The translations under genes and the position numbers were made by a program. Of a stretch of DNA of 64,000 bases, positions 54,867 to 64,000 are shown piece by piece. Under the pieces are notes generated by a model, which did no database searches, was not told the origin of the DNA, and saw nothing but the letters and a program-made list of their open reading frames with translations. The DNA comes from Macrostomum hystrix (Eukaryota; Animalia; Platyhelminthes), in contig CATNEN010000038.1 in the NCBI GenBank assembly GCA_950097015.1, forward strand, positions 16,182,001 through 16,246,000, in the 5' to 3' direction. Position 1 is the first letter of the stretch; every line of letters starts with the position of its first letter.

Positions 54867-57800
54867 ATGGCAGACAAGCTTGCTTTCAAGCAAGGTCTAC
54901 GCCATGCATCTCAAGCAATTGTTATTACTAGACAGAACTTGTTTGCTGTCTGTAGGTAAGTGTACTTATGTGCTGTCTACAAGTTGTTTGATAAATGTTT
55001 TACAATTGTTATCATACATTCTTTGCAGTCTTTGTGTCAAAAGTATATTGGACAGAGCCTGCTTTCAAGTTGTTGATGAGTCATCTTTAGATTTACAGAA
55101 CTTTCTCAACATCATTGAGACTATCTTCTTCTTTCAGTTTAAAGGTAGGTAACTGCATTGGTGCATTTATCGCCAAGCTTGGACTGCCTAACAAGCAGCA
55201 TTTTCATTGCAGGAAATATTGATAATAAACGGAACCCCTATTCTGTTTTAAAATATTGTGCTACTAAAAATACTAGTCACCTGTTCCATACCATTGAGAG
55301 TCTGGACAAGCTCAATCACTTCATTGGCAAGGTATGTCTATTCGATCTCTTGAGAGTCAAGTTGTAAAATGTATTATGCAGTATTAAATTAATGCAAACT
55401 TATTTTATAGTTTCGAGCAGCCATTCGACTTGCATTAATGAACAAGTGTCTCTATATTTTACTAGAGACACTTCTGGCCAAGCGATCAGCTTTAGAGTAA
55501 GTAGTTTAGTATTTATTTCAATTTTGTTTATTTTAAAGCATATAAGAAATATTCTATCTTTGTAAAGTCTTATAGTACAGTCATAAAATAATTTGCTAGA
55601 AAGGTAATGCAGGCTGATTGTAATTTTGCTGTCTGTATTCGTAGTGTACTGGTATTTTTATATGCCTATTATTCCAACCCACAGCTACAAACCATGAATT
55701 AAGTACATGTACTATTGTTTAACATATAAAGTTTCTTAGACTCGACCTTCACTCTTGGCACAGCATCTTAATTTATTAATGAATTAATAAGCTGCTCGTG
55801 AATGCTAGTGAAGGTAGATTAAAACTGACGGTAAATCTGCAGTCTGTCTTCGTTGTCTAGCTCTGATTTAAATAGCCTGACTCCGACCTCTGGGACTGCT
55901 ACATCTTACAATAACACGCTTGAAAAATGTTACACAGCCTTCCTTTGCTAATGCAAGACACGTTTATACAATAAGGCAATTGAATAAACAAACAAAGAAG
56001 ATATAAACCCTACTGTCGTCCTAAGCACGGCTGATAAGTGCCAATTTTATTAAACAGCCTTCACTCTTGGCATAGCAATAATTATAATTCTCTAGATGTG
56101 TTGCTTGTGAATGCTAGTGAAGGTAGATTAAAACTGACGGTAAATCTGCAGTCTTTCTTCGTTGTCTAGCTCTGATTTAAAATAGCCTGACTCTGACCTC
56201 TGGGACTGCTACAGACAAACTTCGAGGGGTCTCCAAAACAGTTTTTTTTCATTTTTACAATCTTTTAATTTCCAGCCACTTGCAAGCAGCATCAAAAAGT
56301 GCGTGCCGGTGTGATATATCGCCACTGTATTTTACGCTCGTACAACGCTACTTGTGCGAATGTTTTATAAGCTTAAAAAATAAATAGGGTGTGGGGCGTA
56401 GGGTGTGAAAGTACGGAATCTTTCATATTAAATCCTCCATCACATTCACTGCACGCTTCGCGGTATGTTGTCGAGCGTTGTCGTGATGGTGGATGTATGG
56501 TTTCTCACCTGACCAACGCATGTTCTGTCCATCAGTTTTATGCATCTGCACAGTGGCACCGTAGCAATCGGCGTTGATAGTTTTTCGTTTTTCCGAAAAT
56601 CAATCGAGAGAGCCACTGCTGTCAAAGAGCTTGAGCGTCAGCATAACCTTCTTGGATTTTTGATCCCGGCACGCCTCGACTGGACTATGCAGGGATTCCC
56701 TGAATCCTCAAACTCGGCTCTCTTCCTTGGTTTCTAGATTGAAGAACCATGTCCTGGTCTTGTCTCGACGAATAATAAGTCTGCTGACGTAACCCTAGCC
56801 ACTATTGTTCAAACTTTCAATTGGACATGGGGATCTCCAAGCACTAAGCCTTGAGGTCAGTTGTAAGAAAGCGCGGCACCCAGTGGCCTGAGATCTCATA
56901 AATTCCCAAATCTTATTCAGTACAGAATGTCAGATATCTGGCGCACGGTGACTCAGATATCAGGATTCATCAGAACTTGAATTTGTTGCGTCAGTCTTGT
57001 GAGCCAACGCCGGACAATTTAGTCTTTTCCGGCTATCGTTTCCGTGGAGATCTTAATAAAAATGCTTCGTGATTCGAGCGCAACTCTACTCAGCAGACCA
57101 GAGTGCAAATATTTGGCTAAGCTGACTCTCGATACTCGAAACAGAGCTCATTATGTCACACAAAACTTGCCTCAGATAATCCTGTGCACGGTAATTTGTT
57201 GATTTGGGATTGAGCACTGAGGCAGTGACCAGAAAAGCCACTTGCGTATTGACAATTCGAAACACTGGTACGCACCTATGCACGCACTTTTGGTTACTGC
57301 AAGTAAGTGGTTGGAGATAAAAAACTTGATTCAATTTATACGTGCTTACTAAACTTAAATATTTCATTTGCCTTTATACTTGTGAAGGTTTAGCAAGGCA
57401 TTGTAGAGCTGTTATAGAAATACCGAGAAATTTTTAGACGCTCGAAGATATTAAATCTCTGCATTGAAATCGAAGTACTTCACTCTTGGCACAGCATCTT
57501 AATTTATTAATGAATTAATAAGCTGCTCGTGAATGCTAGTGAAGGTAGATTAAAACTGACGGTAAATCTGCAGTCTGTCTTCGTTGTCTAGCTCTGATTT
57601 AAATAGCCTGACTCCGACCTCTGGGACTGCTACATCTTACAATAACACGCTTGAAAAATGTTAAATAGTCTTCCTTTGCTAATGCAAGACACGTTTATAC
57701 AATAAGGCAATTAAATAAACAAACAAAGAAGATATAAACCCTACTGTCGTCCTAAGCACGGCTGATAAGTGCCAATTTTATTAAACAGCCTTCACTCTTG

Positions 57801-60800
57801 GCACAGCAATAATTATAATTCTCTAGATGTGTTGCTCGTGAATGCTAGTGAAGGTAGATCAAAACTGACGGTAAATCTGCAGTCTGTCTTCGTTGTCTAG
57901 CTCTGATTTAAATAGCCTGACTCCGACCTCTGGGACTGCTACATCTTTCAATAACACGCTTGAAAAATGTTAAACAGTCTTCCTTTGCTAATGCAAGACA
58001 CGTTTATACAATAAGGCAAACAAAGAAGATATAAACCCTACTGTCGTCCTAAGCACGGCTGATAAGTGCCAATTTTATTAAACAGCCTTCACTCTTGGCA
58101 CAGCAATAATTATAATCCTCTAGATGTGTTGCTCGTGAATGCTAGTGAAGGTAGATTAAAACTGACGGTAAATCTGCAGTCTGTCTTCGTTGTCTAGCTC
58201 TGATTTAAATAGCCTGACTCCGACCTCTGGGACTGCTACAGACAAACTTCGAGGGGTCTCCAAAACAGTTTTTTTCATTTTTACAATCTTTTAATTTCGA
58301 GCGCAACTCTACTCAGCAGACCAGAGTGCAAATATTTGGCTAAGCTGACTCTCGATACTCGAAACAGAGCTCATTATGTCACACAAAACTTGCCTCAGAT
58401 AATCCTGTGCATGGTAATTTGTTGATTTGGGATTGAGCACTGAGGCAGTGACCAGAAAAGCCGCTTGCGTATTGACAATTCGAAACACTGAGGCCAGATC
58501 GCACCTATGCACGCACTTTTGGTTACTGCAAGTAATTGGTTGGAGATAGAAAATTGATTCAATTTATACGTGCTTACTAAACTTAAATATTTCATTTGCC
58601 TTTATACTTGTGAAGGTTTAGCAAGGCATTGTAGAGCTGTTATAGAAATACCGAGAAATTTTTAGACGCTCGAAGATATTAAATCTCTGCATTGAAATCG
58701 AAGTACTTCACTCTTGGCACAGCATCTTAATTTATTAATGAATTAATAAGCTGCTCGTGAATGCTAGTGAAGGTAGATTAAAACTGACGGTAAATCTGCA
58801 GTCTGTCTTCGTTGTCTAGCTCTGATTTAAATAGCCTGACTCCGACCTCTGGGACTGCTACATCTTTCAATAACACGCTTGAAAAATGTTAAACAGTCTT
58901 CCTTTGCTAATGCAAGACACGTTTATACAATAAGGCAAACAAAGAAGATATAAACCCTACTGTCGTCCTAAGCACGGCTGATAAGTGCCAATTTTATTAA
59001 ACAGCCTTCACTCTTGGCACAGCAATAATAATAATTCTCTAGATGTTGCTTGTGAATGCTAGTGAAGGTAGATTTTAAAACTGACGGTAAATCTGCAGTC
59101 TGTCTTCGTTGTCTAGCTCTGATTTAAAATAGCCTGACTCCGACCTCTGGGACTGCTACATCTTACAATAACACGCTTCTTAAAAAACTTATTTCTACCA
59201 CTGGTCCAGACACGTTTATACAAAAAGTGAATAGCATAAACCAGCAAGGAAGATATAAGCCCTACTGTCATCCTAGGCATGGCTTTAGCAGCTGACAGTT
59301 GCCCATTCAATTAAACAGCCTTCACTCTTGGCACAGCAATAATTATAATTCTCTAGATGTGTTGCTTGTGAATGCTAGTGAAGGTAGATCAAAACTGACG
59401 GTAAATCTGCAGTCTGTCTTCGTTGTCTAGCTCTGATTTAAATAGCCTGACTCCGACCTCTGGGACTGCTACAAGAATCACTTTAAAGTAGATTTGTAGT
59501 ATTGGTAGAGTTTTCGACTCGTCCTTCACCATTGGCACATCATCTTGAAACAATAAGCTGTTTGTAAAAGCAAGTGAAGGTAGATAAAAACTGACGGTAA
59601 ATCTGTAGTCTGTTTTAGTTGACTAGCTGTGATTTGGAATATGCTAGCCTGACTCCGACCTCTGCGACTGCTGTTCAGTTCATGTCAGCTGTAAACGACA
59701 TCCCTCATACCCCACGTCGTCCTCGCGCAGGCTGCACTACTTTGAGGACTCTGTGTTTCGCTGTCCAGATGCGGCAGCCCTGGTTTCTCAGCTAGCAGGT
59801 CTAGATGCTCTGGATCTTAGCTTCGACCTGCGCTCTCCCAGTCTAATTGAACAGCTGTGCTATCCGCGCACCTGCCCAATTGACTATGCCGCCCACATGA
59901 AGCTGCTAGTGCTAGACGAGGCTAAACTAGACGATCAGATTGAATTGGCTGCCGACGCCAGCTCGCCGGAGGCCGCCATCCTGACTGCCGAGGACACCTC
60001 CGAGCCGCAGCTAGCCGACTGTCCGCATTGCGATTGGCGCAACCGCTACCTGCGTGTGGAGGCCCAGTTAAAGCGAACTGCCGAACAGAAGTCCTACCTA
60101 GAGGAGGTGCGTGCACTTTTTGAGTTTTTACATGTAAAGCTAAAATAGGCTTTTATAGATGCCCTTGGATGAAATTTTAGCCTAATAGTTAAGTATTTCA
60201 TTAAGTGATTTATAGGTCAGTGGTTCGATTCCTTACTCTGCTGGAAAAGATGTGTCATGTAGCAGCAGCTCTATCTTGTAGACATTAAAACTCTTTCTAT
60301 TCAGCCGTCCGTGGACTGAACAGCCGTATAGCTGCGACTGCTGTTGGGTGACAATCTGGCAGGTGTCAATAGTTGTTTTTTATAGACTAGTAATAACTTT
60401 GTTGTTGGCTATCACGTGGTAAGCTTTTTGTCTCACCGGAAGTTAGGAACAGCTGGATGAATATATTTTGTACTGCTTTAATCTTCAGCATTAGCTATCA
60501 TGTTTAGACACTTGCCGATTTTAATATAGACTCTGTAGTGTATCAGAGACAACATTTAAATCGACTGAATGTTTTCAAATTAAAATTTATGTGGAAATTC
60601 CATGGAAAACCCTGCGTTGCTTGATTATTAAAGGTCAACAAGCGCATAACTGAGGAACGCGACGGGGCCAATGCGGCGCGCGAAGCCGCCAAACTTGAGC
60701 AGGCCAAGGAGATCAAGTTATATGAGAGTGTGGTGCTGGAACTGCAGGTACAGTTGACTCTACTGCAGGAGCAGTACAATAGGCGGCTAGCCACTGCCTC

Positions 60801-60885
60801 TGTTGCGGCCAGTGTTCACGCTGGCGACGGTGTCACCAGGCCCAGACTGCCGCAGTTGGATAGGCAGGACTCGGACCCGCTGTGA
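54867..60885 (+). CDS. RUNDC3: RUN-domain protein, RUNDC3/RPIP8-like (~345 aa); exons 54867-54955, 55029-55144, 55213-55331, 55411-55496, 59731-60106, 60634-60885
   Basis: RQNLFAVCSLCVKSILDRACFQVVDESS, KFRAAIRLALMNK.L, LAGLDALDLSFDL, IDYAAHMK, WRNRYLRVE..QKSYLEE and ESVVLELQVQL parallel RUNDC3 motifs. All introns are GT-AG and phase-consistent (1038 nt). Confidence 0.85.
55746..55906 (+). ncRNA. SNORA57: Box H/ACA snoRNA, U99/SNORA57-like, copy 1 (type A)
   Basis: Hairpin CCUUCACU..AGUGAAGG, H box AGAUUA, hairpin GCAGUC..GACUGC, ACA. Pockets UCUUGG/AAUGCU and GUCUUC/ACCUCUG are complementary to 18S rRNA. Confidence 0.8.
56058..56216 (+). ncRNA. SNORA57: Box H/ACA snoRNA copy 2 (type B)
   Basis: Same boxes and pockets; different apical part of hairpin 1. 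Confidence 0.78.
56220..57447 (-). mobile_element. Degenerate Tc1/mariner-like element inside the snoRNA array
   Basis: Ends CTTCGAGGGGTCTCCAAAA / TTTTTAGACGCTCGAAG resemble mariner CGAGGGG termini. About 1.2 kb, decayed interior, TA TSD not intact. Confidence 0.55.
57478..57637 (+). ncRNA. SNORA57: Box H/ACA snoRNA copy 3 (type A)
   Basis: As copy 1. Confidence 0.78.
57789..57946 (+). ncRNA. SNORA57: Box H/ACA snoRNA copy 4 (type B)
   Basis: H box AGAUCA; ACA intact. Confidence 0.78.
58086..58243 (+). ncRNA. SNORA57: Box H/ACA snoRNA copy 5 (type B)
   Basis: Boxes and pockets intact. Confidence 0.78.
58247..58675 (-). mobile_element. Internally deleted duplicate of the mariner-like element
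   Basis: Left end (CTTCGAGGGG...TTTTAATTTC) joined directly to the sequence matching 57075-57447. Confidence 0.65.
58706..58865 (+). ncRNA. SNORA57: Box H/ACA snoRNA copy 6 (type A)
   Basis: As copy 1. Confidence 0.78.
59005..59163 (+). ncRNA. SNORA57: Box H/ACA snoRNA copy 7 (type B, H box altered to AGAUUU)
   Basis: Pockets and ACA intact; H box disrupted by a T insertion. Confidence 0.6.
59319..59476 (+). ncRNA. SNORA57: Box H/ACA snoRNA copy 8 (type B)
   Basis: H box AGAUCA; ACA intact. Confidence 0.78.
59523..59675 (+). pseudogene. Degenerate snoRNA copy 9
   Basis: Recognisable homolog, but the pockets are mutated and ACA is replaced by GTT. Confidence 0.65.
60175..60370 (+). mobile_element. 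Degenerate tRNA-derived SINE, family 1-related
   Basis: GGTTCGATTCC B box and a GGACTGAACAGC..TATAGCTGC..CAGGTGT tail matching family 1. Confidence 0.5.
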
Positions 60886-60990: not shown

Positions 60991-63900
60991 TGTGGCGCCG
61001 TCGGTCTATCGCGGCCAGGCGCATTGATAGCCTGAGCGTGGACGGTGCCGCCAATGTCCTTTAACTCTTCACTGACCTATTAACGTACATGCCTATTGTG
61101 TGGCACGTGGCCACCGCTCAATAATATCGCACGTTGTACTTGTATCTCGCGTTCTATATAAGTGATGTGACTGATGCACAAATATATTATCGTGTTCGCT
61201 CCAAACTAACAAACATAAGAGTCACTCTAAACGACACGACAATGGCATCGCGAGCAGACGACCTGCCGCTGGACGACCCTGCAACGACGGAGGCCTGGTT
61301 GAGGAGCTTCGCCGCCATGAGCCGCAATAAGAAATTGAAGGACACGGCAGAGGAGAGACAGGTGACGGACTTGTTCCTTGCCAGGGCAGGCGTAAGCGCA
61401 GTTCGTGTCGTAAGTGTGATGGCGAGACCAAAAGAGCTGGAGGAGATGAACTTCGAGGATATCAGAAAGCTGATCTTGGAAAAGGTTCGCCCAAAGAAGA
61501 AGCTGATCATTGCCGAGCGCTCTCGGTTTTTGTCCCTGCGCCAAGAAGCAACTGAGTCAGCACAAAATTTCGCCCAGAGACTTCGAGATGCCGCCCGCTT
61601 CTGCGAGTTCGACAAGCTGAACGCCGAAGACAGCAAACAGTCAGCAGAGGACGAGCTCATCCAGACAATGCTGGTCAGTGGCCTGCACAATGCACAGCAT
61701 CGCAGCAAAATTCTTGAGCACATCCAGAGCTCACAGCAACAGGTGACGCTCGAAAACAGCGTGGAGTTTGTCCAACAACTCGAGCTCATCCAGCAATACA
61801 GCGGAGCGGAGAGACAGAAGGCACCGGAGCCAGCGACGATCGAGCCGGCGTCCATCGCCAGCGTGGACAAAAACCGCGGGGGCCCGAAGACCGCCTGCAA
61901 AGCCTGCGGCCTACAGCACCAGCCTGACCGCTGCCCAGCTTGGGGCAAAACCTGCAACAAGTGCCGCAAGCGAAACCATTTCGCGGTCGTGTGCAGATCC
62001 GGGACCAAGGCAGCGCATGAAGTCACGGAAACAGCCGGGGCCGACACCATCAGTAGCACTCATCAGCAGAAGACCAGCAGCCTGAAGACAGTGCTGATCG
62101 AGGGTCAACGCATGGAGATGCAGCTGGACTCCGGCTCTGATGCCAGCATCATCCCGAGAAATTTCTGGCAGCAACTGGGCGAGCCGAAGTTGCGGAAATG
62201 CCGCCGGCAACTCAGGCAGTTCGACGGATCAGCCATCAAAACCCTCGGCAGCTTCACAGCGGCTGTCGAGCTAGAAGACAAGGTCGCCTGCGTGGACATC
62301 ATCGTCGCGGCCTGCAACAAGACACACGGTCTGCTGGGCACCGACTTGCTGCAGTTCGACCTGGACGGCGTGTCCCTGCACAACGTCGAGGAAGCACCGG
62401 CAGTCACGCTGGGAAAGCTTCGCGGATTCCGGGCCCGCATCGTTCTGAAGGACCAGGCCCGGCCTAGCTACTTCGAGGCTCGACCTGTCCCGATCCACCT
62501 GAAACCGCTGGTCATCGCTAAGCTCAGGAAGCTGATCAATGCCGGAATCCTGGAGACGGTCCGCCCCGGAGGGAGCCAGTGGGCATCCCCTATCGTCATC
62601 GTGAGGAAACCGGACGGCGACTTGCGGATCTGCGCCGACTACAAAGTGAGTGTGAACCCGCAAATTTGCGCAGACTCGTACCCGCTCCCGAACATCGAGA
62701 CAGCCTTTACAGAGCTGTCAGGGATGTCCCACTTCGCCACGGTTGACCTGACGAACGCCTACAACCAGATCGAGCTGGACGAGTCGGCCAGGGAAATCCT
62801 CACCATCAACACCCCGATCGGTTTGCTGCGCTGGACGAGGATGCCTTACGGCGTGAAAACTGCGAGCGCGCAGTTCCAAGCTGCCATGGAAGCCACGATC
62901 GGCGGTCTGGTGACAAACCTGGTGATCTATCAGGACGATGTCTGCATCGGCGCCCGGACAGCAGCTGAACTGGACGCAAAAGTCGAACAACTGCTAGCCA
63001 AGCTGAGCAAGTCAGGGATGGAGATCAACGAGAAAAAGTGCGTCTTCAGGAGCACCGAAATATCCTTTCTGGGATACCGAATCTCTGCTGAAGGCATCCG
63101 GCCGGACACCAAGCTGGTGGAGAAAGTGCTGCAAACCAAAGCGCCAACGTGTCGGAAGGAACTGGAGTCATTCCTAGGGCTGACGAACTACTACGCCCGC
63201 TACATCCAGGCCTACTCCGAGCGAGTCGAGCCGCTGACTGCCTTAAGGAGCCGCCAGACACCGTTCAAATGGGGCCCGAACCAGCAGAAGGCGTTCGACG
63301 AACTTAAACGGGCGCTGGCGGCCTATCCGGTGATCCGGATCTTCGACCCGACGAAGCGCACGACTTTGACTACGGACGCTAGTGAGAAGGCGGTCTCAGC
63401 CATCCTCACGCAAGACGGCCACCCAGTGCTCTACCTCTCCAGGCGGCTGACGGCAGCCGAGCAAAACTATTCCAACATCGAGAGGGAGGCTCTGGCCATC
63501 GTGTGGGCGACACAGCGAGCGAGGCACTTTCTGCTGGGAGCCAAGTTCACGCTAAACTGCGATCATCAGCCGCTCGAGTTTATCTTCAGTCCGTCGAAGG
63601 AGCTGCCAAAGGTGACATCGGCCAGGATCATGCGCTGGGCTATCCAGTTGGCTGCATTCGACTACGACATTGTCTATGTTCGTGGCAGTTGCATTCCACA
63701 CGTCGATGCTATGTCCAGACTGGAGTTTGAGGATTCGTTCGAAAATCCTAAAGAGGAGGTGAGTCGCTTCGTTCATTGGACTGAGACTGACGTGCTGAAG
63801 CGAAATGAAATTCAACAGGCGACTGACGATGACCCTGTGCTACGGAGCATCCGACAGCGAATCAAGAACAACGTCTGGAGCAACTGCTCGGCGGCAGAAC

Positions 63901-64000
63901 GGCCGTACAAGAGTGTCCGGCAACAACTGACGGTGGAAGATGGCATCATCTGTCTGGGAGACCTGATTGTGCCTCCGGCAAGGCTGCGCTCTCGAGTCCT
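60991..64000 (+). mobile_element. Ty3/gypsy (Mag-like) LTR retrotransposon, 5' part, runs off the window
   Basis: Putative 5' LTR TGT...ACA at 60991-61241 with TATATAA near 61155; PBS-like TGGCATCGCGAGCAG. The LTR start cannot be confirmed without the 3' LTR. Confidence 0.85.
61242..64000 (+). CDS. gag-pol polyprotein (gag, PR, RT, RNase H, start of integrase region), apparently open to the window end
   Basis: MASRADDL.. start; CKACGLQHQPDRC and CNKCRKRNHFAVVC knuckles; LDSGS; LRICADYK; YQDD at 62928 in frame; TTDAS, NYSNIEREALA, CDHQPL, VDAMSR. Confidence 0.92.
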   Translation, partial: MASRADDLPLDDPATTEAWLRSFAAMSRNKKLKDTAEERQVTDLFLARAGVSAVRVVSVMARPKELEEMNFEDIRKLILEKVRPKKKLIIAERSRFLSLRQEATESAQNFAQRLRDAARFCEFDKLNAEDSKQSAEDELIQTMLVSGLHNAQHRSKILEHIQSSQQQVTLENSVEFVQQLELIQQYSGAERQKAPEPATIEPASIASVDKNRGGPKTACKACGLQHQPDRCPAWGKTCNKCRKRNHFAVVCRSGTKAAHEVTETAGADTISSTHQQKTSSLKTVLIEGQRMEMQLDSGSDASIIPRNFWQQLGEPKLRKCRRQLRQFDGSAIKTLGSFTAAVELEDKVACVDIIVAACNKTHGLLGTDLLQFDLDGVSLHNVEEAPAVTLGKLRGFRARIVLKDQARPSYFEARPVPIHLKPLVIAKLRKLINAGILETVRPGGSQWASPIVIVRKPDGDLRICADYKVSVNPQICADSYPLPNIETAFTELSGMSHFATVDLTNAYNQIELDESAREILTINTPIGLLRWTRMPYGVKTASAQFQAAMEATIGGLVTNLVIYQDDVCIGARTAAELDAKVEQLLAKLSKSGMEINEKKCVFRSTEISFLGYRISAEGIRPDTKLVEKVLQTKAPTCRKELESFLGLTNYYARYIQAYSERVEPLTALRSRQTPFKWGPNQQKAFDELKRALAAYPVIRIFDPTKRTTLTTDASEKAVSAILTQDGHPVLYLSRRLTAAEQNYSNIEREALAIVWATQRARHFLLGAKFTLNCDHQPLEFIFSPSKELPKVTSARIMRWAIQLAAFDYDIVYVRGSCIPHVDAMSRLEFEDSFENPKEEVSRFVHWTETDVLKRNEIQQATDDDPVLRSIRQRIKNNVWSNCSAAERPYKSVRQQLTVEDGIICLGDLIVPPARLRSRV

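Follow-up and report, generated by a model that had tools for sequence, protein, structure and literature searches.

An intronic array of H/ACA snoRNA units with predicted SNORA57-type targets in Macrostomum hystrix

In the flatworm Macrostomum hystrix, an array of H/ACA snoRNA units lies within one intron of a host gene, and the reality of this array was confirmed in the window (the whole stretch of 64,000 nucleotides that was analyzed). As judged from the sequence, the best explanation is that the units correspond, in the flatworm, to vertebrate SNORA57 (U99) and nematode ceN88. Taken together, it is probable that they are genuine H/ACA genes of this type, that they are released from the host intron, that they guide modification at SSU U959 and U1000/U1001, and that they were multiplied by local duplication. 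The overall interpretation of the array proposed in a first-pass annotation of this DNA is supported.

Layout of the array

Nine direct units of ~157 nt each were located on the + strand across positions 55746-59678, in addition to the relic u0 (Table 1). The same nine units were recovered by three independent routes, namely exact core matches, a repeat finder (family D3, nine copies) and a covariance model, in agreement with the nine same-strand repeats of ~160 nt described by the first-pass annotation. The sole detection by Tandem Repeats Finder was a 297-nt period at 57524-59473. The annotation had also spoken of nine snoRNAs; nine units are indeed there, but six of them are fully canonical and intact (u1, u3, u4, u5, u6 and u8), two are impaired (u2 and u7) and one (u9) is dead, to which u0 has to be added. 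Two variants had been distinguished, and the unit alignment agrees: the differences between variant A (u1, u3 and u6) and variant B (u2, u4, u5, u7 and u8) are confined to the top of hairpin 1, the pockets being identical.

The view of a plain tandem array had to be abandoned, as the units are divided into three higher-order blocks by a 1.26-kb insert and its partial copy. From its sequence, the partial copy appears to mark a duplicated higher-order block. Weak matches to the insert (70-79%) were found elsewhere in the genome, and a Pfam search of it returned no match. On its minus strand, it carries a motif that we take to resemble the mariner type, and the insert is possibly a decayed DNA-transposon remnant.

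Table 1. Positions of the array units, inserts and flanking host features in the window.
Feature	Positions	Strand	Description
Upstream host exon	55411..55496	+	28 residues, weak RUN match; spliced contigs from three runs
Host intron	55497..59730	+	4234 nt, GT..AG, contains the whole array; joint 55496>59731
u0	55550..55692	+	Heavily decayed tenth relic; 3' hairpin and ACA recognisable; 20.5 bits with model R1
u1	55746..55906	+	Variant A; canonical H/ACA snoRNA gene
u2	56058..56216	+	Variant B; 5' strand of pocket 2 with G>U; upper stem 1 with a U-G wobble
Insert	56217..57476	.	1.26 kb, unrelated to the units, old, weakly repeated; splits the array
u3	57477..57637	+	Variant A, canonical; first lower-stem pair lost (A for C)
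u4	57789..57946	+	Variant B, canonical; H box AGAUCA
u5	58086..58243	+	Variant B, canonical
Partial insert copy	58244..58704	.	~790 nt missing; repeat-finder families D5 and D6
u6	58705..58865	+	Variant A; sequence identical to u3
u7	59005..59163	+	Variant B; UU insertion breaks the H box; 2-nt deletion in hairpin 1
u8	59319..59476	+	Variant B, canonical; H box AGAUCA
u9	59523..59678	+	Decayed; GUU for ACA; both pockets mutated
Downstream host exon	59731..60106	+	Spliced contigs from four runs

H/ACA structure and predicted rRNA targets

RNAs of the H/ACA class are made of two pocketed hairpins separated by a hinge that carries the H box (ANANNA), and end 3 nt after an ACA. Each guide recognizes rRNA or snRNA by bipartite complementarity around an unpaired U-N, the target uridine being placed 14-16 nt upstream of the H or ACA box. 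The minimum-free-energy folds of the units follow a hairpin-hinge-hairpin-tail arrangement and, together with the positions of the boxes, support the hairpin-H-hairpin-ACA architecture that had been read from the sequence. Seven of the nine units carry AGAUUA or AGAUCA as their H box, and u9 carries AGAUAA; in u7, the insertion leaves AGAUUU, which fails the ANANNA consensus. An ACA follows the 3' hairpin in all units except u9. The distance between pocket and box is 15 nt for either pocket in every unit, and becomes 14 or 16 nt if pocket 2 is read in an alternative register; the box and pocket motifs quoted by the first-pass annotation, as well as its 15-nt distances, were exact. When all paired positions of the proposed structure were examined across the units, 96.9% of the cells could pair, compared with 26-50% when the partners were slid. 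No covariation was observed, the copies being too similar to one another; one compensated pair was found in the lower stem of the relic u0. The hinge is long (24 nt).

Both target strings are present in the animal's own 18S, and the complementarity of the pockets to the two 18S sites, as put forward by the first-pass annotation, is supported in this species. When the animal's 18S, 28S and 5.8S were scanned, a single best site was obtained for pocket 1 (SSU U959, with 6+6 Watson-Crick pairs) and similarly for pocket 2 (U1001 with 8+7 pairs, or U1000 with 7+8 pairs). Shuffled guides reached the real value of pocket 2 in 1 of 400 cases and that of pocket 1 in 28 of 400 (7%); the score of pocket 1, by itself, is not rare. 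Which of U1000 and U1001 pocket 2 selects is ambiguous in the structural model, since the pairing calls for the opening of 2 bp in the predicted upper stem. The spacing between the targets is 42 nt, as it is between human 1004 and 1046 and between yeast 947 and 989. By comparison of the sequences, SSU U959 would be the equivalent of human 18S-1004, and U1001/U1000 the equivalents of human 1046/1045. A retargeting of u0 or u9 to another part of the rRNA was also considered and rejected, as the structurally consistent registers yielded no convincing site. The 18S of this animal is 1813 nt long, and a U1 gene is located in its rDNA spacer.

Among 4227 Rfam families, the best two full-length matches were ceN88 (RF01660; 26.5 bits for u2 and 25.6 bits for u4) and SNORA57 (RF00191; 17.1 bits for u4, E 0.041 when 176 nt were searched), and the guide strands were aligned in both cases; all these scores are below the gathering cut-off, which is 40 bits for both families. 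At gathering thresholds, the whole 64,000-nt window gave no Rfam match. The SNORA57/U99 identity put forward earlier is upheld by the dual specificity and by the order of the hairpins but not by the Rfam threshold (17.1 versus 40 bits), and the nematode family scored higher than the expected one. Genome-wide scans with RF01660 and RF00191 gave nothing above the cut-off among the ~40 candidates scored out of thousands, which is a weak negative.

Host intron, evolution of the array and alternative readings

The position of the array in a single intron, on the strand of the host, was borne out by spliced RNA contigs. Runs X2, X3 and X4 each gave contigs with the joint 55496>59731, and the corresponding intron spans all units, with ~52-55 nt separating u9 from the 3' splice site downstream of it. 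These RNA runs consist of contigs, apparently from mRNA libraries. The contig depth was 2-5 on units and spacers alike, versus 19-29 on the exons.

The host had been called RUNDC3-like. When the host exons were searched one by one against Pfam, the sole match was to RUN (PF02759) in exon 55411-55494 (13.9 bits against a cut-off of 22 bits, E 0.061, profile positions 67-93); nothing was detected in the remaining host exons, and the host locus was absent from the list given by a genome-wide RUN scan. Exon 4 had no homologues in either protein library searched, two protein matches of this exon being discarded as repetitive false positives, and searches of the host exons against the PDB were empty or gave chance matches. 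On this basis, the host is weakly suggested to be RUN-like, and its assignment to RUNDC3 is not fully supported by the match of one 28-residue exon.

According to both BLAST and the covariance model, the array is the sole locus for its RNA in the 220-Mb genome. Within a block, the units differ at 6 of 308 aligned sites and the homologous spacer at 23 of 135 (Fisher p = 3e-8); the divergence of the units is thus ~ninefold lower than that of the neighbouring spacer, which in addition contains many indels. The u3/u6 blocks are 100% identical to each other, as are spacers s4-5 and s6-7. A second snoRNA hidden in the spacers was rejected: the folds were inconsistent across the spacer versions, neither C/D nor H/ACA boxes were present, and the matches of spacer sX8 were due to chance. 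We propose that the array would have been built by repeated local duplication, including that of larger blocks carrying the insert, and that the inner copies may have been held alike via purifying selection and/or gene conversion while both edges decayed. Part of the identity of the inner copies could come from recent duplication instead of selection.

The strongest competing explanation is that the array is mostly dead weight, in which one or two copies work and the rest is a satellite-like, unprocessed by-product. Damage is visible in at least four of the ten elements (u0, u2, u7 and u9), the segments that are 100% identical fit a very recent duplication, and an unrelated insert was co-duplicated with the units. 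However, all boxes, stems and guide residues are intact in six copies, and the units have diverged ~ninefold less than the homologous spacer of the same block. The decay, moreover, sits at the edges of the array, as is expected under concerted evolution of an array that is used. We consider it unlikely that most of the array is without use.

If the units are working H/ACA genes released from the host intron, every unit would be transcribed within the intron of the host pre-mRNA. The hairpin-H-hairpin-ACA fold of each unit would be bound by the H/ACA core proteins dyskerin/Cbf5, Nop10, Nhp2 and Gar1, after which endonucleolytic cleavage and subsequent exonucleolytic trimming would clear the spacers and leave RNAs of ~155-160 nt. 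In these RNAs, the 5' pocket would put SSU U959 into the active site, and the 3' pocket U1001 and/or U1000. The accumulation of the mature RNAs, their processing route and the pseudouridines themselves are what we infer from these features. A quite improbable alternative to release from the host intron is that the units are transcribed independently, as a polycistron driven by one or more internal promoters. The fact that ten of the ten elements are in the host sense and strictly inside one intron argues against it, even though promoter-bearing polycistronic snoRNA clusters occur in trypanosomatids as well as in plants and yeast (PMC2780460) and the contig depth of the intron is not negligible in comparison with the exons.

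Finally, the idea that the assembly multiplied one or two real copies deserves almost no credit despite the segments that are 100% identical: the copies differ in their A/B variants, H boxes, three 3' flanks, diverged spacer, and insert and deleted insert copy, and therefore do not come from one collapsed unit, while independent RNA contigs show the junctions A>spacer, spacer>B, B>spacer and B>insert.

Significance and comparison with known systems

Both the kind of RNA and the intronic-cluster layout are already known; taken alone, the array is an expected gene, real but fairly ordinary. The flatworm nevertheless gains a predicted guide for a pair of conserved pseudouridines in its 18S, and a two-target RNA in the style of SNORA57 is suggested beyond vertebrates, in this flatworm and, by the Rfam consensus, in nematodes. 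For annotation, the array is a warning, as repeat masking would conceal the genome's only source of a SNORA57-type guide.

A wider reading would be that the rRNA guides of this lineage routinely come from single-intron arrays, with dosage set by copy number, an endonuclease pathway and an ancient bilaterian dual-guide linkage; as a whole, this remains doubtful. If it were true, the host genes would be ordinary ones, possibly weakly or tissue-specifically expressed, and the dosage of the snoRNA would depend on copy number and concerted evolution and not on a host promoter of the strong, housekeeping type. Intronic polycistrons would have to be processed by an endonuclease-dependent pathway, which, to our knowledge, has so far been inferred for flies and plants only. 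The pairing of 1004 with 1045/1046 would then be an ancient bilaterian linkage, retained as both sites assist each other. Were intronic arrays general in the lineage, they would offer a handy system for the study of multi-snoRNA excision and array homogenisation.

In vertebrate SNORA57, the 5' pocket targets 18S-1004 and the 3' pocket 1045/1046 (PMC8522698, PMC6984369). The flatworm units share with it the same two predicted 18S specificities in the same hairpin order, their guide strands align to its Rfam consensus, and both are intronic and in the sense of the host. They differ by their 24-nt hinge and by their 5' pocket, which is canonical in the flatworm (two unpaired target residues, 6+6 pairs) and has been described as non-canonical in human SNORA57, with three unpaired residues (PMC8522698). 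Furthermore, vertebrates have one SNORA57 gene per intron, whereas the flatworm has 8-10 copies in a single intron. For nematode ceN88, the alignment is full-length (model positions 1-140), and the consensus strands CUUGG / AUGUU and CUUCG / CCUCUG are aligned with those of the flatworm pockets, whereas the sequence of the stems and loops is unrelated. A literature search found no text on the targets of ceN88, and functional equivalence with it is read from the consensus alone; the search likewise found no text on 'Psi18S-1086', on Macrostomum snoRNAs or on invertebrate SNORA57 orthologues.

With at least two sense genes in one spliced intron, the array takes its place among intronic snoRNA clusters. 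Intronic H/ACA clusters are known in rice and Drosophila (PMC2780460), the Drosophila ones from Huang et al. 2004 and 2005, as cited in PMC5932544. As in the flatworm array, several snoRNA genes lie on the same strand of one intron and are often isoforms of one another, which implies processing of an intronic polycistron (PMC2780460). The flatworm array differs from the clusters of rice and Drosophila by the higher copy number of one snoRNA species, by its higher-order repeats with a co-duplicated insert, and by the decayed copies at both of its edges.

Units of the array and their host intron

The first-pass annotation had described nine snoRNAs in tandem. When a 12-nt unit core was searched, nine exact matches were found on the + strand and none on the − strand, and the repeat finder returned one family (D3) of nine copies. 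Furthermore, a covariance model trained on these copies detected the same nine loci, and no others, in the whole 220-Mb genome. The number of units (u1 to u9) was thus upheld by all three approaches, but not all are intact, since six are flawless (u1, u3, u4, u5, u6 and u8). In unit u2, a G in the 5' strand of pocket 2, the guide pocket of the 3' hairpin, is replaced by U; the H box of u7 has become AGAUUU through a UU insertion; in u9, the ACA is replaced by GUU and both pockets are changed. A tenth element, u0, located between the host 5' splice site and u1, keeps the 3' hairpin, the ACA and one compensated lower-stem pair; no foldable hairpin 1 was found in it, nor any credible rRNA target on scanning. 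The remark that a repeat masker would label the array as satellite was fair, because Tandem Repeats Finder reports a 297-nt period alone, over part of the region.

Positions of the array, its host gene and neighbouring elements
Feature	Position	Strand	Remark
u0	55550-55692	+	tenth element, heavily decayed; 20.5 bits, covariance model with filters off
u1	55746-55906	+	variant A
u2	56058-56216	+	variant B
Unrelated insert, 1.26 kb	56217-57476		old sequence
u3	57477-57637	+	variant A
u4	57789-57946	+	variant B
u5	58086-58243	+	variant B
Partial insert copy, ~790 nt missing	58244-58704		co-duplicated with snoRNA blocks
u6	58705-58865	+	variant A
u7	59005-59163	+	variant B
u8	59319-59476	+	variant B
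u9	59523-59678	+	decayed copy
Host exon	~55027-55144	+	spliced contigs
Host exon	~55213-55331	+	spliced contigs
Host exon	~55411-55496	+	spliced contigs
Host intron, whole array inside	55497-59730	+	GT..AG, spliced contigs
Host exon 4	~59731-60106	+	spliced contigs
Host exon	~60634-60882	+	spliced contigs
LTR-retrotransposon gag-pol frame	61125-64000	+	aspartyl protease, reverse transcriptase, RNase H
U1 snRNA gene, full-length	L017:2768-2930 = G000:C15 (rDNA of the same genome)	−	151.7 bits

The exon map was drawn from spliced contigs of three runs of one study, and the following host intron was confirmed by a fourth run. As had been proposed, these contigs place the array within one host-strand intron, every element being in sense to the host gene. 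Contig depth was 2-5 on units, spacers and insert alike, against 19-29 on the exons; the host intron is therefore transcribed, and the coverage is uninformative on mature snoRNAs. Junctions of several different types recur in the low-depth contigs, and this speaks against an artefact of assembly.

For the host protein, searches were run one exon at a time. A RUN-domain gene is plausible, as RUN (E 0.061) was the only Pfam match of a 28-residue exon, and RUNDC3-like is a putative label; the remaining exon-level searches were all empty. The first coding exons (54868-55496) have a very high AT content and tiny introns, of 68 and 79 nt, between them, whereas exon 4 is GC-rich, and no homologue of exon 4 was detectable among 1.8 billion representative proteins. 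Downstream, the gag-pol frame is open for 958 residues, up to the window end. Since the following host exon falls outside the window, this LTR retrotransposon lies in the next host intron, in sense.

Anatomy of a unit and its rRNA targets

The minimum-free-energy folds consist of a hairpin, a hinge of 24 nt, a second hairpin and a short tail. According to the feature table of the units, lower stem 1 (CCUUCAC/GUGAAGG) carries pocket 1, with strands UCUUGG and AAUGCU(A), and is followed after 1 nt by the H box, AGAUUA or AGAUCA. Lower stem 2 (GCAGUC/GACUGC) carries pocket 2, with strands UGUCUUCG and ACCUCUG, followed by U-ACA. Both pockets lie 15 nt from their box; these are real, well-formed H/ACA units with the architecture first read from the sequence. 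Of all cells, 96.9% satisfied the proposed pairing, sliding the partners lowered this to 26-50%, and no covariation could be demonstrated among the copies, which are too alike. Variants A and B have identical pockets and are distinguished solely by the apical part of hairpin 1, in agreement with the earlier description.

The pockets had also been said to be complementary to 18S rRNA, and this was checked in the species' own rDNA (18S, 1813 nt; 28S, 3757 nt; 5.8S), where every uridine was tested for H/ACA-type bipartite pairing. For pocket 1, the single best site was SSU U959, with 6+6 Watson-Crick pairs and U and G as unpaired residues. For pocket 2, it was SSU U1001 (8+7 pairs) or U1000 (7+8 pairs), depending on whether the duplex starts at A or at CC of the 3' strand; either register requires that 2 bp open in the predicted upper stem. 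Shuffled guide strands reached the total of pocket 1 in 28/400 trials and that of pocket 2 in 1/400. In the same rDNA, a U1 snRNA gene sits in the intergenic spacer, between 28S and the next 18S.

Evolution of the array and proposed processing

Three higher-order blocks were distinguished: A-spacer-B-insert, A-spacer-B-spacer-B-partial insert and A-spacer-B-spacer'-B. Elsewhere in the genome, the insert has only weak echoes of 70-79%. Its minus-strand frame 56426-56599 contains a motif which we take to resemble mariner/Tc1, and this frame had no Pfam match.

When block u7-spacer-u8 was compared with block u4-spacer-u5, the units differed at 6/308 aligned sites and the spacer at 23/135, with a further 30 columns of gaps in the spacer (Fisher p = 3e-8). 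Compared with the sequence around them, the units are thus under constraint or are selectively homogenised. Decay has gone furthest in u0 and u9, which occupy the two edges of the array; u9 ends ~52-55 nt upstream of the 3' splice site. Such decay at the edges typically marks concerted evolution in tandem arrays.

From general H/ACA biology, H/ACA proteins would assemble on each unit during intron transcription. Endonucleolytic cuts in the spacers, then exonucleolytic trimming, would free the units from the excised or nascent intron, and the released RNAs would direct pseudouridylation of SSU U959 and U1000/U1001.

Probable kinship with SNORA57 and ceN88

We found no literature on Macrostomum snoRNAs. 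Intronic snoRNA gene clusters are known in rice and Drosophila, according to PMC2780460 and references listed in PMC5932544.

A short stretch was scanned against 4227 Rfam families. The best match was the nematode snoRNA ceN88 (25.6 bits, E 0.0015; 26.5 bits in another scan) and the second the vertebrate SNORA57 (17.1 bits, E 0.041), both below their gathering score of 40 bits, with full-length alignments and guide strands in register. The proposed SNORA57/U99 identity holds for the predicted target pair and hairpin order, but not for Rfam membership. For hairpin 1 plus its box (57788-57858, +), TB8Cs2H1, a single-hairpin H/ACA snoRNA of trypanosomatids, also came up weakly (14 bits, E 2); this may be chance, or a very distant lineage may have the same guide.

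The target pair belongs to an already known snoRNA. Human 18S-1004 is guided by the SNORA57 5' pocket, 18S-1045/1046 was later shown to be mediated by its 3' pocket, and the sites correspond to 947 and 989 in yeast (PMC8522698; PMC6984369). The flatworm 959-1001 spacing of 42 nt equals those of human 1004/1046 and yeast 947/989. The units are most likely a SNORA57/ceN88 orthologue working like them, scoring below Rfam's own standard for membership. By predicted pairing, they would serve the corresponding sites with the same hairpins as SNORA57; the flatworm 5' pocket is canonical, whereas in the human pocket, by the published description, three residues stay unpaired.
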